Shown here piece by piece: positions 1 through 57,420 of a stretch of DNA of 64,000 nt. The stretch is taken from contig RDEW01000029.1 of NCBI GenBank assembly GCA_011109175.1, positions 220,158 through 284,157 on the forward strand, read 5' to 3'. A model generated the notes under the pieces. It saw nothing but the letters and a program-made list of their open reading frames with translations. It was not told the DNA's origin and did not search any database. The stretch comes from Dicyema japonicum. Taxonomy: Eukaryota > Animalia > Dicyemida. Positions within the stretch are counted from its first letter, which is position 1; each line of letters opens with the position of its first letter. A program made the position numbers and the translations under genes.

Positions 1-917
1 CTACCACGTGTTACTTTAGTTTCGATCTTCTGAAGAGACCACAGCAGCTTTAGCCTTCGATGGAATAACTCTTAGAGGCCAACCACTGAAATTACGTCGC
101 CCACGTGACTACGTCCCTCCGTATGGCAATGCTGATGGGGAAATGGGTACTTCTCATTTTGATAGGCAGATCCCCTCATGATTGGCGATTCTCCCAACAA
201 AATATACGTCGGTGGTCTTCCTTCTTACTTGGGACAAGACCAGGTATATTTACCGTTTCATTATTTGTTTCCACGTGCTATTCGTGGACTTAATTACTAT
301 CTGATAATTAGGTGAAAGAACTCCTCATTTCTTTCGGTCCCATAACCAGTTTTAACCTCGTGCTTGATGAGGCTGCTGACGTGGCCAAATGTTACTGTGT
401 TTATGTGGACCCGGCATCCGTGGATAAGGTTTTCCGTGATTTTAAAGAAGGCCTGTGCGGGACTGAATGGGATGACTTTGGGAGATAAGACGTTAGTAGC
501 TCAGAGAGTCTCTGGAGGACTGAGACCGGCCATTACAGCCCTAATTCCCCAACTTCCTGGTACGGGAGCTGCTGTGGGATCTGAACCGCCAACAGAGGTT
601 CTGTGTTTGATGAATATGGTCACTATTGAGGATCTTGTAGATGATGATGACTTCCAAGGTTATTGAGTTGTCAAATTTTAGACATTTTTGAGGACGTACA
701 GCAGGAGTGTTCAAAGTTTGGAGAAGTAAAGTCTATGGAGATCCCCCGACCTAGTATGGCTACACACGTGCCTGGTGTAGGGAAAATATACGTGGAGTTT
801 GACTCGATTACGTCTTCTCAGAAGGCTCAGTTGCACCTTTCAGGTCGTAAATTCATGGATAGAGTCGTCGTCTCTTCGTTTTTTTCAGTGGGCAGATATC
901 ATAATAGAGATTTCTGA
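1..917 (+). CDS. U2AF2: Splicing factor U2AF large subunit (U2AF65), 3' part (RRM1 end, RRM2, UHM); 5' end lies outside the window
   Basis: Spliced translation [31 protein letters not shown]...[15 protein letters not shown]...[12 protein letters not shown]...[11 protein letters not shown]...VGKIYVEF...[14 protein letters not shown] introns at 147-169 (23 nt), 244-311 (68 nt), 429-450 (22 nt) and 659-681 (23 nt) restore the frame. Stop at 917. Confidence 0.95.
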
Positions 918-1152
918 TTTAGGTCTTTTAACTTTTATTTGTGGCTCCTTTTTGTAGTTTGGATTTATTTACATCTAATGTGACTGATTGGGATTCTCTT
1001 TTGAAGAGGTGTTTTATTATGGAATAGTGTTGAGAAGGTTATCCTTGAGAGTCTTCGTATTGGGGTTGGTTAGGGGGTCGTCGTTTGAGGAATATTTTTT
1101 AGTTGGAATCATTTGGTTAATAGTTGAGTCGCTCGGTTGTTGGTTGCTTTGT

Positions 1153-1653
1153 TAGGGTAGGTTGACACAATTTGGTAGTCTGGATGTGATTATTTAAAGG
1201 GGTGGTTATTATTTATCTAATTGTATGTGAGGAGGACCAACTAGAGTAGTGGTTAGCTATGGCTTTGATCTCTACGCTGTTGCCTACCAATTAAATTAGT
1301 CCGAATTTTTTAATAAATTACTTTCGGAATGCGGATTGTCAAGTTACGGTTCATTGAAGCCTGTTTGTATGGAAACTAAGATTTTGTTGACTCATCAAAT
1401 GAAATCGGATTACTGGGGGGTCACTGTAATTGAATTAATAAAAAATCGACGTGGCGTTGCCTCTTTTAGTCTCAGCTGCTTCGACCGCGGAAAACCTAAA
1501 AATCAAGAAATATTCTTTCCTCGGGGATCGCTATCGATTTACTCCTGTTGCGACCGAATCATCGGGAGCCGTTGGTCCAATGACGGCTGAATTCTTGCAA
1601 GAACTCGGAGGATTGCTTGCCGGAAAGAAAAGGGATCAACGAGAAGGGTTATG
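1153..1653 (+). repeat. 501-bp direct repeat, copy 1; ends at an N gap
   Basis: Appears identical to 3534-4034 and is followed by n at 1654. Confidence 0.95.
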
Positions 1654-55630: not shown

Positions 55631-55639
55631 TAATCCATA

Positions 55640-57420
55640 CCCGTCGCAACAAATGTCCATGCTTACAAATTCACACAATACATCACAAACGATTTTGGAT
55701 TACGAATTTGGAGCAGTCCCGGTAGAAAATAGACGTTCCCGTACAAGTAACTGCTCCAGCCTTCCATAAAATGTCCACAGAATTGTATCCAGTCATTATA
55801 TTACTCTTGCTTTTTTAATTTCGTCTCATTGACCACCAAGATGTCGATCTTGGAGGACCTCGCAAGTAGTGCTAGTTCATTTTGCCTTTTCCTTAAAGAT
55901 CGGGCATTCACTAGCACTATTTTTAGTCCTTGCTTCAAAAATTTAGATGACCTTGCTTCTTCAAAGCCAAGGTCACCATTTCCATTAAATCCACATGTGC
56001 AATAGAGCACAAATAGTTTAACCGCGACATAATCTCCGATATTTCAGCGTGTATCTTCTCTGATAGATTGGATGAGACATCGTTCGGTTTTCGACGAATT
56101 TTAGGTGCCGACTTTGACATAACTGTCTTTGCTGTACACGTTCTCCCAATTATCGCCTGTCCATCGCCTTTAGTTGCTTTCCTCTGATCAAATTTCTTGG
56201 CGGCTGGGCATCCACCATATCTGGCACAGTGTGAGGACGAGCCACAATTTATACAATTCATTGTGTTCCCAGGAGTCTCTCCACAAGCAGTCAAGTCGTG
56301 TTCCCCTGCACAACGGAGACATCTTGTCTTCTCCTTACAGAAGGAGATATGTGTCCATAGCGTTGGCATTTGAAACATATAGGTGGGCCTCTTCTTTACC
56401 ATTCACATGTAATCGGCACGTGGCAATGTTGAAACCAAGACGGACAAGCGATGTAGCCTCCGCTCTTGATAACTAGAACTTTTGCAAGAGGGAGTCTCCT
56501 ATCTCCCTTGTAGAAACGGGATATGCTCGTAGTAGAGGGAGCTAATTCCTTGACAAATTCATGAAGGTCGTTATCATCAACCCAAAATGACAAGTTCTTC
56601 AACGCAATTTCGGACGATTTCACTCGGATTTCACTGAAACAATGGTTTCCAAGACCAAAGGGTGAAGTGGCATTTACATGTTCACAAAAGTTCCTTTTGT
56701 CCTCCTCCTTCGTGAATTCAAGGCGGAAGATGCCGGAGCCTTTGTGGCTCAATCTAATAGACCCTGTCGGGTCGAACGAGTACAGTAAGTTGGAGATTTT
56801 GATGGCTCCCATATTTGACATAACAGTGATTTGTATAAAAGCATTCACAGAGTATTCAAAAGGAGACTTCAGAGACACATCCTTAACATTTTCAATACAG
56901 CTATTCTTTAAAACCCCTCCAGAGGTAGTCTCATCGTTTTCAATATAATTCTCCTTTAAGACCTCTCCAGAGTTGGTCTTTTTGATTTTAGTATTCTTCT
57001 TTGTAGTAGCTCTTCTAACGACAGGCATGAAGCTTCAAAGATGCTGACAGTGCTATCAGCAATAGGTAGTTCCTGGTTTTGGAATCATCCTCACAACAGC
57101 TTTCTTCCATATTAAAGGCAAGTGGCCAAGTCGTAAACACCCATCATAAAGAAATCGCAGACAATCAAACAAAATATCCGGACCCTCTTTGATAAGTTTC
57201 ATTGATATGTGGTCATATCCTGGAGCATTGACCTTGCATTCCCTGATAGCTGTCATCACTTCAAAGATGCTGACAGTGCTATCAGCAATAAGTAGTTCCT
57301 CGTCGGAGTGTTTAAATATATCGGCAGACACCTTCTTTTTGTCATCAGGGATCAAACTCCACGGATCCACACCCTGAATTGTTTGGAGCTGATCCCTGAA
57401 TATCGAAGGTGTTTCCTCCG
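55640..57420 (-). mobile_element. Jockey/I-like LINE: ORF1 (CCHC knuckles), APE start and a displaced RT fragment
   Basis: CLRCAGEHDLTAC, CINCGSSSHCARYGGCP, IVLVNARSL, ILVVNETKL. RT piece APGYDHI...WKKAVVRMIPKPG at 57056-57370. Confidence 0.88.

Follow-up and report, generated by a model that had tools for sequence, protein, structure and literature searches.

Why is one palindrome, CACGTG, so common in the DNA of the dicyemid Dicyema japonicum? In the window, by which we mean the whole 64,000-nt stretch analyzed, the word occurs 51 times between positions 5 and 59369 (0.80/kb), with 48 of the 51 sites before 50 kb. A sequence-only reading of the same DNA had put the number at about 50. Every coordinate it listed is present, and its counts of sixteen sites at 9.4-15.5 kb, seven copies of the 8-mer CCACGTGG, and about ten copies of CAGCTG (11 by our count) were reproduced. 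It missed one site in the 50-64 kb region, where it saw two and there are three (55237, 56417, and 59364). The reversed word, GTGCAC, occurs twice. Under an order-3 Markov model, CACGTG ranks first of all 4,096 hexamers in the window, both by observed/expected ratio (O/E) and by z-score.

We first consider ordinary causes: composition, codon usage, dipeptide content, or the copies of one repeat. Markov models of order 0, 1, 2, and 3 predict 8.5, 5.7, 8.1, and 13.2 sites per strand, respectively. An order-4 model reaches 33.2, but this figure is artificially high: of the 156 CACGT words, 102 belong to the motif, which therefore feeds its own 5-mers into the model. The Markov control that the sequence-only reading had named as a possible refutation leaves the excess in place up to order 3. 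Nor is the excess limited to the window: 200 kb of contig C1, taken as an independent sample, contain 68 sites against 23 expected. Genome-wide, CACGTG occurs 21,851 times and GTGCAC 4,535 times; CCACGTGG occurs 2,763 times and GGTGCACC 147 times. The excess is about 6-fold in the window and 3-fold over the whole genome, and it reaches 7-10 fold in host DNA.

Codon usage does not account for it either. Non-repeat CDS models (14.3 kb) hold 14 sites, compared with 2.0 +/- 1.3 after synonymous shuffling, and none of 500 shuffles reached 14. These sites are split over the three reading frames (3/8/3), which bears out the earlier claim of exonic sites in different frames beyond the reach of codon usage. 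The gene models are home-made; the introns checked against RNA are the two of RPL4, which were all that a single sequencing run behaving like RNA yielded, and a search turned up no run registered as RNA. A dispersed repeat family with the core GGGATCACGTG does carry the word (38578-38583, reverse strand, with a second copy at 47790-47795), but its 745 genome copies make up only 3.4% of all sites. The flanks of sampled sites show no conservation past position -1, and tRNA and Rfam scans of the window gave no matches. The excess is a DNA-level, genome-wide property for which composition, Markov context to order 3, codon usage, and protein sequence are insufficient. Ordinary causes are, for practical purposes, refuted.

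The sites reach into conserved proteins. The densest stretch, with 16 sites in 6.1 kb (9400-15500), spans RPL4, an unannotated spacer, and a kinesin-8-like gene. In RPL4 (forward strand), one site lies in the 5' leader (9439-9444), 8 nt before the ATG (9453-9455) and 2 nt in from the 5' terminus of an RNA-like contig, with an AT-rich stretch upstream. A second (9703-9708) is read as CCA CGT GTG and encodes a conserved P-R-V, so it represents a synonymous choice. A third (10099-10104) is read as CAC GTG and encodes H-V; the resulting RRHV is also the yeast state (RRHVQ in yeast, RRRIQ in fish). The span that we assign to the kinesin-8-like gene (reverse strand) contains four sites, two of them in the motor-domain ORF. 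The site at 13414-13419, in a motor exon, encodes T-R-V in SKLTRV, where relatives have a near-invariant SKLTRL. The site at 13746-13751, also in a motor exon, encodes P-T-W in EPTWAN, which is EPTAAN in KIF19 and EPTDAN in kinesin-8. The others are at 13362-13367 and, in the motor-domain ORF, at 13813-13818. In the exon for the C-terminal RRM of U2AF65, a forward-strand site (765-770) encodes H-V in ATHVPG (GVEVPG in human), and three further sites lie upstream in the gene body (5, 102, and 272). We compared the kinesin, U2AF65, and RPL4 residues with solved structures; the departures at EPTWAN, LTRV, and THVPG, which the sequence-only reading had noticed, are real differences from these homologues. 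Alignments of all three proteins with homologues show no gap at the residues that the word encodes, and we rejected the idea that CAC+GTG is a six-base transposon excision footprint.

Densities differ between genes. U2AF65 has 4.4 sites/kb, RPL4 2.8/kb, and the kinesin-8-like gene 2.2/kb, and TrpRS has 5 sites in 2.3 kb, whereas a myosin-like host gene (31900-34750, reverse strand) has none in 2.85 kb. This contrast of housekeeping or proliferation genes with a myosin-like gene covers fewer than 10 genes. A protein search with a 203-aa TrpRS exon returned no dicyemid relative, and the best match was 58-64% identical.

The earlier reading had placed the sites mainly inside host genes. This needs qualifying: density is about 1/kb in host DNA, similar in coding and non-coding parts, and falls to chance level in LINE ORFs, young repeats, and the transposon/repeat coding models. 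A sliding classification by coding potential had suggested no difference in density between coding-like DNA and the rest. Because LINE ORFs confounded it, we replaced it with a host/repeat split of the CDS models. A young LINE with a reverse transcriptase (61096-62776, forward strand; 585 first-look candidates in the genome, the best copies 97-98% identical) has no site. A second dispersed family (...TCTCACGTG...GTGGCTTTTTAG...) carries one in most copies (23459-23464, forward strand), and the two recognizable families together hold only about 12 of 119 sampled sites. Repeat copies compared in pairs, which are non-independent, retain CACGTG in 72% of cases, and the figure over all hexamers is 44%. 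A tandem duplication of 173 bp (80% identity) upstream of a predicted gene has the word in both copies (45319-45497, forward strand).

The distances from site to site come close to a Poisson expectation (CV 1.03-1.10). By our own rough calculation, pair counts fit a roughly two-compartment genome, with about 20% at about 1.2/kb and the remainder near chance. Nucleosome-scale spacing of about 150 bp was suggested by 13 of 58 short gaps at 140-180 bp in samples. However, genome-wide pair counts drop smoothly (662 at 109-139 bp, 598 at 140-170 bp, and 545 at 171-201 bp), and no periodic spacing was found in this range.

This near-uniform, near-random scatter over coding and non-coding host DNA, together with the lack of excess in LINE ORFs and young repeats and the rough two-compartment fit, would suit a mark of host-DNA identity. 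CACGTG would then be selected for density rather than position, and its probable reader would be a dimeric protein, of the bHLH type or another. Such a mark could flag resident DNA, for example for retention, amplification, or openness during somatic chromatin elimination or selective amplification. Passages of PMC6543705 that cite Noto 2003 and Awata 2006 report somatic chromatin elimination and extrachromosomal circles in dicyemids, which fits. However, a universal mark does not predict that host genes range from none in the myosin-like gene to 4.4/kb in U2AF65, and the whole-animal assembly is still 49% repeats (PMC6736024). We regard a density mark as doubtful. Its most specific form, an animal 'self' signature read by a Max-type dimer that separates resident genes from transposons in programmed somatic remodeling, is quite unlikely in our view; if true, it would have no described precedent among metazoans as a sequence-encoded mark of genome identity.

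Molecular drive offers a different account. A repair or gene-conversion bias for the CACGTG allele, confined to euchromatic, transcribed, or recombining DNA, could accumulate sites that need no individual function, possibly through a bound protein that shields the word from breaks or repair. Sites in all frames and at amino-acid-changing positions would follow, as would the near-random scatter, and the absence from transposons would follow if these are heterochromatic or young. Old repeats argue against it. Their elevated O/E (about 3) looked like accumulation with age. Inspected copy by copy, however, about 48 kb of old repeats proved to have inherited nearly every site from the family ancestor, and transitions are now eroding these sites. 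The private ones number only about 3, where, as a rough estimate, about 19 would be expected if drive acted there.

None of the nine strand-collapsed one-mismatch neighbors of CACGTG is depleted (O/E 0.86-1.44); they are mildly enriched. The deamination products CATGTG/CACATG are enriched at O/E 1.36, and CpG is undepleted, with an O/E of 0.83 that equals GpC. Profile searches of the 67.5 Mb genome (about 76% BUSCO-complete; PMC6736024) for the DNA methyltransferase and Vsr families PF00145, PF01555, and PF03852 returned zero matches. Selection is favored over drive by the mildly enriched neighbors, by repeats that lose the word and hardly gain it, and by the lack of matches to methylase or Vsr profiles. 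Euchromatic drive would also leave the coincidence with an E-box unexplained, unless a bHLH protein mediates the bias, and we consider it unlikely. The sequence-only reading had proposed a genome-wide DNA-level mark or bias. The genome-wide, DNA-level part holds, whereas methylation and a general motif-creating mutational bias are both disfavored by the profile searches, the undepleted CpG and neighbors, and the lack of new sites in old repeats.

The same results bear on comparison with HIP1 (GCGATCGC) of cyanobacteria. Both words are hyper-abundant palindromes found in all three frames and in non-coding DNA, beyond codon usage, and HIP1 is not promoter-associated (PMC5861425). This shared phenomenology would suggest a palindrome kept by sequence-specific DNA methyltransferases and very-short-patch-type repair. 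HIP1, however, is a bacterial octamer enriched 15-300 fold (PMC5861425) and tied to two DNA methylases (PMC4390886, PMC13756078). The Dicyema word is an animal hexamer whose enrichment is smaller (3-fold in the genome as a whole, 7-10 fold within host DNA), and the profile searches found no methylase. Together with the undepleted CpG and the 1.36-fold enriched CATGTG/CACATG, this makes a strict system of the HIP1 type very improbable.

A promoter-proximal component is suggested by a small peak: the 100 nt ahead of 40 predicted start codons hold seven sites, where 1.8 would be expected. The bulk of sites is scattered near-randomly. Position -1 is C in 31% of sampled sites, compared with 23% before CA generally; genome-wide, 12.6% of sites are CCACGTGG, which corresponds to about 36% C at -1. 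C at this position is the Myc/Max-type flank. No clear partner motif and no AT-rich or GC-rich context was found around the sites. The sequence CACGTGAGT occurs at 4 of 119 sampled sites, with about 4 expected, and we rejected a splice-donor role (CAC|GTGAGT). No predicted intron in the window overlaps CACGTG, so the sites that the sequence-only reading had put in micro-introns and at a splice donor were not confirmed.

The genome contains candidate readers of the word. HLH profile searches gave 37 matches. Basic regions of the form HNxxERxRR number 20, compared with 4 in a control, and 11 of the 20 coincide with HLH matches. The Max-type HNALERKRR is present at two loci, the Myc-like HNVRERQRR at two loci, and one further bHLH gene, on contig C1, has RRVDHNLRERRRR. 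Judged by these motifs, predicted bHLH proteins of the Max and Myc types are encoded in the genome, with an H-E-R basic region of the kind that recognizes CACGTG. Of the two kinds of gene that the sequence-only reading had suggested looking for, class-B bHLH genes are present, and the profile searches found no DNA methyltransferase. The identity of the word with an E-box, which the sequence-only reading had as an aside, becomes the strongest single clue because these genes are present.

We therefore favor, at a probability of roughly 45%, that CACGTG represents putative selected binding sites of class-B bHLH proteins spread through host genes. Selection would maintain the word at about 1/kb in host DNA as the site for a dimeric class-B bHLH(-Zip) protein of the Myc/Max/USF/TFE type. 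Transposons would lie outside this selection and stay at chance level, save for families that bring their own copy. With introns of 22-27 nt and very short spacers, the gene itself is the DNA available, so sites would fall in leaders and spacers as well as in exons and would override synonymous and some amino-acid choices. Binding, if it occurs, may activate housekeeping and growth genes or open chromatin generally.

Several observations favor the bHLH sites. The top hexamer is the canonical class-B E-box, which an arbitrary drive would pick about once in 64 (there are 64 palindromic hexamers). Class-B readers are encoded in the genome, and C is preferred at -1. There are 7 sites against 1.8 upstream of start codons, in addition to the RPL4 leader site. 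Housekeeping and proliferation genes (U2AF65, RPL4, kinesin-8, TrpRS) are rich in the word and the myosin-like gene has none. The reading is weakened by the majority of sites that are not promoter-proximal, by near-Poisson gaps, and by the lack of context or a strong partner motif. Four sites in the span of one kinesin gene, one of them altering a near-invariant residue, would also be unusual for ordinary regulatory sites.

The layout differs from that of known systems. The class-B E-box of Myc/Max, USF, and MiT/TFE shares the CACGTG core and a mild C/G flank preference, and Max- and Myc-type basic regions are predicted in Dicyema. A Dicyema site stands at the 5' end of RPL4, a ribosomal protein gene, and in flies this class of genes belongs to the core targets of Myc (PMC4430873). 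Known sites, however, are concentrated within about 100 bp of start sites; for 77% of the Drosophila Myc peaks that contain a canonical E-box, the distance is at most 100 bp (PMC4430873). The Dicyema sites run mostly through gene bodies and alter codons and residues, a very different layout that counts against bHLH binding sites. Our text searches of the literature found no report that known E-boxes are over-represented genome-wide or in exons. The uptake words USS/DUS of Haemophilus and Neisseria are also short, reach high copy number, and shape the encoded proteins. They spread by biased DNA uptake and recombination in competent bacteria, a route that an animal does not have.

The literature text searches also turned up no description of a CACGTG excess in a dicyemid or another animal. 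The usual picture of animal genomes does not include a transcription-factor word that fills the host's genes, skews their codon choice, and even alters a near-invariant motor-domain residue. If the word is a density-selected mark or a product of drive, it would be a eukaryotic counterpart to the 30-year-old HIP1 puzzle, with a known family of reader proteins that makes it testable. If the sites are bound, Dicyema would show how regulation is organized when introns and spacers are reduced to near nil and most transcription-factor families are lost.

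CACGTG occurs 51 times in the window (0.80/kb). All site coordinates listed in the sequence-only reading were recovered, as was its count of sixteen in 9.4-15.5 kb; its low number in 50-64 kb stood, although three sites lie there and not two. Markov models predicted, per strand, 8.5 (order 0), 5.7 (order 1), 8.1 (order 2), 13.2 (order 3), and 33.2 sites (order 4), the last being necessarily inflated, since the motif itself supplies 102 of the 156 CACGT words. At order 3, CACGTG ranked first among all hexamers in the window by both observed/expected ratio and z-score. CCACGTGG was present 7 times with <1 expected, matching the earlier count, and the control palindrome CAGCTG, put at about ten, was counted 11 times.

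The excess is not limited to the window. An independent 200 kb sample of contig C1, which together with the window made up the 264 kb analyzed base by base, contained 68 CACGTG vs 23 expected. The assembly used (67,542,437 bases, 377 contigs) corresponds to a published 67.5 Mb in 377 scaffolds with GC 36.7%, a mean intron of 38 bp, and 49% repeats (PMC6736024). It contained 21,851 CACGTG vs 4,535 of the reversed control GTGCAC, and 2,763 CCACGTGG vs 147 GGTGCACC; we calculated ~7,400 CACGTG from composition (GC 36.7% and 4.1% gaps, PMC6736024). The genome mean density is 0.32/kb, and the window is 2.5 times denser. GTGCAC is itself under-represented (2 in the window and 6 in 200 kb of C1 vs about 17-23 expected; below the ~7,400 from composition genome-wide), and CCTAGG is low as well (10 vs 27 in 264 kb). 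After CACGTG, the strongest excess of a non-repeat hexamer in the window is that of TGAATG/CATTCA (69 vs 43.5, order 3), which shows mild enrichment around CACGTG (10 vs 2.7 within 40 nt of a site).

We predicted coding sequences (CDS) with a home-made generalised HMM gene finder trained on the 264 kb of window and C1 sequence; it converged on 22-26 nt introns and recovered both larger RPL4 introns seen in RNA. The best 40 CDS models (29.6 kb) hold 17 sites in frames 4/8/5, vs 4.3 ± 2.0 under synonymous shuffling and 3.0 ± 1.8 under codon permutation. Long CDS models without sites were LINE reverse transcriptases (Pfam). Dividing the models by self-BLAST repeats and reverse transcriptase content gave 14 sites in 14.3 kb of host CDS (0.98/kb; synonymous shuffle 2.0 ± 1.3, with 0/500 shuffles reaching 14) and 3 sites in 15.3 kb of repeat or transposon CDS (0.20/kb; shuffle 2.15, not significant), so that transposon ORFs carry the word at chance level. 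Codon usage is thus insufficient as a cause, as had been argued. Ordinary causes, by which background word or codon composition would produce the excess, are scarcely credible, since neither the order-3 model (13.2 vs 51) nor the host CDS shuffle reproduces the counts. Up to 50 kb, the window averages 0.96/kb overall, and word density is therefore similar in host coding and non-coding DNA. Young repeats (identity >=95%) contained 0 sites in 13 kb, and a young LINE (RVT_1) at window 61096-62776 had no CACGTG; this element had 585 first-look genome candidates, the best copies being 97-98% identical over 1.6 kb.

Alignment to solved structures agreed with three of four proposed departures from the usual residue at CACGTG sites: kinesin EPTWAN (EPTAAN in KIF19, EPTDAN in kinesin-8), kinesin SKLTRV (SKLTRL in relatives), and U2AF65 ATHVPG (GVEVPG in human). 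In RPL4, RRHV is the yeast state too, and the site at P-R-V involves only a synonymous choice. The kinesin, U2AF65, and RPL4 alignments have no gap at the word; the sites are therefore substitutions, and 6-bp insertions were ruled out.

Sites are scattered almost at random. Inter-site gaps are near Poisson (CV 1.10 in the window, 1.03 in C1), and the variance/mean of site counts is 1.2-1.9 in 1-5 kb bins. C precedes 31% of sites vs 23% of CA in general, and CCACGTGG makes up 12.6% of genome sites, implying ~36% C at -1 genome-wide; flanks were otherwise uninformative, and within 200 nt we saw neither a composition shift nor a clear partner motif. Genome-wide pair counts of 662 (109-139 bp), 598 (140-170 bp), and 545 (171-201 bp) gave no support to a ~150 bp spacing. 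They are 2.4-2.9 times the 228 expected for a homogeneous genome and fit our rough two-compartment model, in which one compartment, ~20% of the genome, has ~1.2 sites/kb and the other is close to chance. Two sites 3.0 kb apart, C1:1062537 and C1:1065536, have identical 50-nt flanks, suggesting that a 3 kb segment was recently duplicated in tandem.

In its near-random scatter, lack of context, and changed conserved residues, CACGTG resembles HIP1, the highly iterated palindrome of cyanobacteria (PMC5861425), and departs from what is known of E-boxes; Drosophila Myc peaks that contain an E-box are within 100 bp of a start site in 77% of cases (PMC4430873). A strict HIP1-type system with a methylase is nevertheless very improbable. 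C5 methylase (PF00145), N4/N6 methylase (PF01555), and Vsr (PF03852) had zero matches genome-wide while control genomes matched, although at ~76% BUSCO completeness a missing Pfam match is no proof of gene absence. CpG observed/expected (0.83) equals the GpC value, and the proposed methylation mark was not borne out. A general motif-creating mutational bias fared no better: the nine strand-collapsed one-mismatch neighbours range from 0.86 to 1.44 observed/expected (deamination products CATGTG/CACATG, 1.36), and none shows the depletion that directed conversion from a precursor word would leave.

Repeats within the samples hold 24 sites, nearly all common to most copies of their family, and deviating copies show transitions (TACGTG, CATGTG, CACATG, CACGTA). 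Only ~3 sites are private to a copy. A drive holding host DNA at 1/kb would roughly add ~19 sites to 48 kb of old copies, assuming 5-10% divergence per copy. This shortfall argues against drive in its universal form; a drive limited to euchromatin is unlikely. Two dispersed families carry CACGTG in a conserved core, the larger accounting for 3.4% of all sites with 745 genome copies. Its core, ...GCTGGGATCACGTGATTAGTTAGTTT..., is followed by an A/T-rich tail. Genome-wide, GGGATCACGTG was counted 745 times vs 2 for the reversed control, and copies of the family lie at window 38578 and 47790 and, in pieces of the C1 sample, at L002:4636, L002:4804, L006:7281, L010:7399, L012:5278, and L016:2296.

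A promoter-proximal component is present and small. Seven sites lie <=100 nt upstream of 40 predicted start codons vs 1.8 expected, and an ATG opening >=40 codons lies within 40 nt of 32 site sides vs 22 ± 4.6 for random positions. In the RPL4 leader, CACGTG sits 8 nt before the ATG and 2 nt inside the 5' end of an RNA-like contig (run X5), immediately downstream of an AT-rich stretch. This contig places the end of exon 1 of RPL4 (window 9437-10494) directly after the ATG (9453-9455), gives micro-introns of 27, 25, and 21 nt, and has 7 single-base differences from the window, all outside the three CACGTG sites. In this small sample, density varies among host genes: U2AF65 4.4/kb, RPL4 2.8/kb, kinesin-8-like 2.2/kb, cytoplasmic TrpRS (in C1) 5 sites in 2.3 kb, two coiled-coil genes 0.6-0.9/kb, and myosin-like 0 in 2.85 kb. 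Across window 10442-15399, DNA contigs from runs X1/X4 show about 18-20 one-base indels (for example 11565, 11962, 14556, 14792, 14823, 15076, and 15185), either assembly errors or heterozygous indels; these break frames, and reading frames are therefore uncertain in about 10.4-15.4 kb.

Candidate readers of the word are encoded in the genome, which has 37 HLH matches. A back-translated HNxxERxRR pattern gave 20 matches (11 on HLH matches) vs 4 in the control, including HNALERKRR, which we take to be the Max signature, and Myc-like HNVRERQRR, each at two loci. A further class-B bHLH gene, with basic region RRVDHNLRERRRR, lies at C1:1179782-1180342 (L018:9782 to L019:342), and a CACGTG at C1:1180008 sits within its own HLH-coding stretch. 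Only 16 homeobox genes are reported for D. japonicum (PMC6736024).

The strongest clue is which word is in excess: an arbitrary process would arrive at this particular palindromic hexamer ~1 time in 64, and a process based on class-B bHLH dimers predicts it. Signatures of selection favour selected binding sites: neighbours are undepleted, the word decays and hardly arises in repeat copies, transposon ORFs are at chance, and the richer genes are housekeeping genes. A host-DNA mark selected for its density, possibly tied to the somatic chromatin elimination reported earlier (PMC6543705), is conceivable but doubtful, and the remaining probability falls to something outside these explanations. We interpret CACGTG, with a probability of about 0.45, as putative bHLH sites that class-B dimers would read and that selection would keep in host DNA, where they may act in transcription or chromatin opening.
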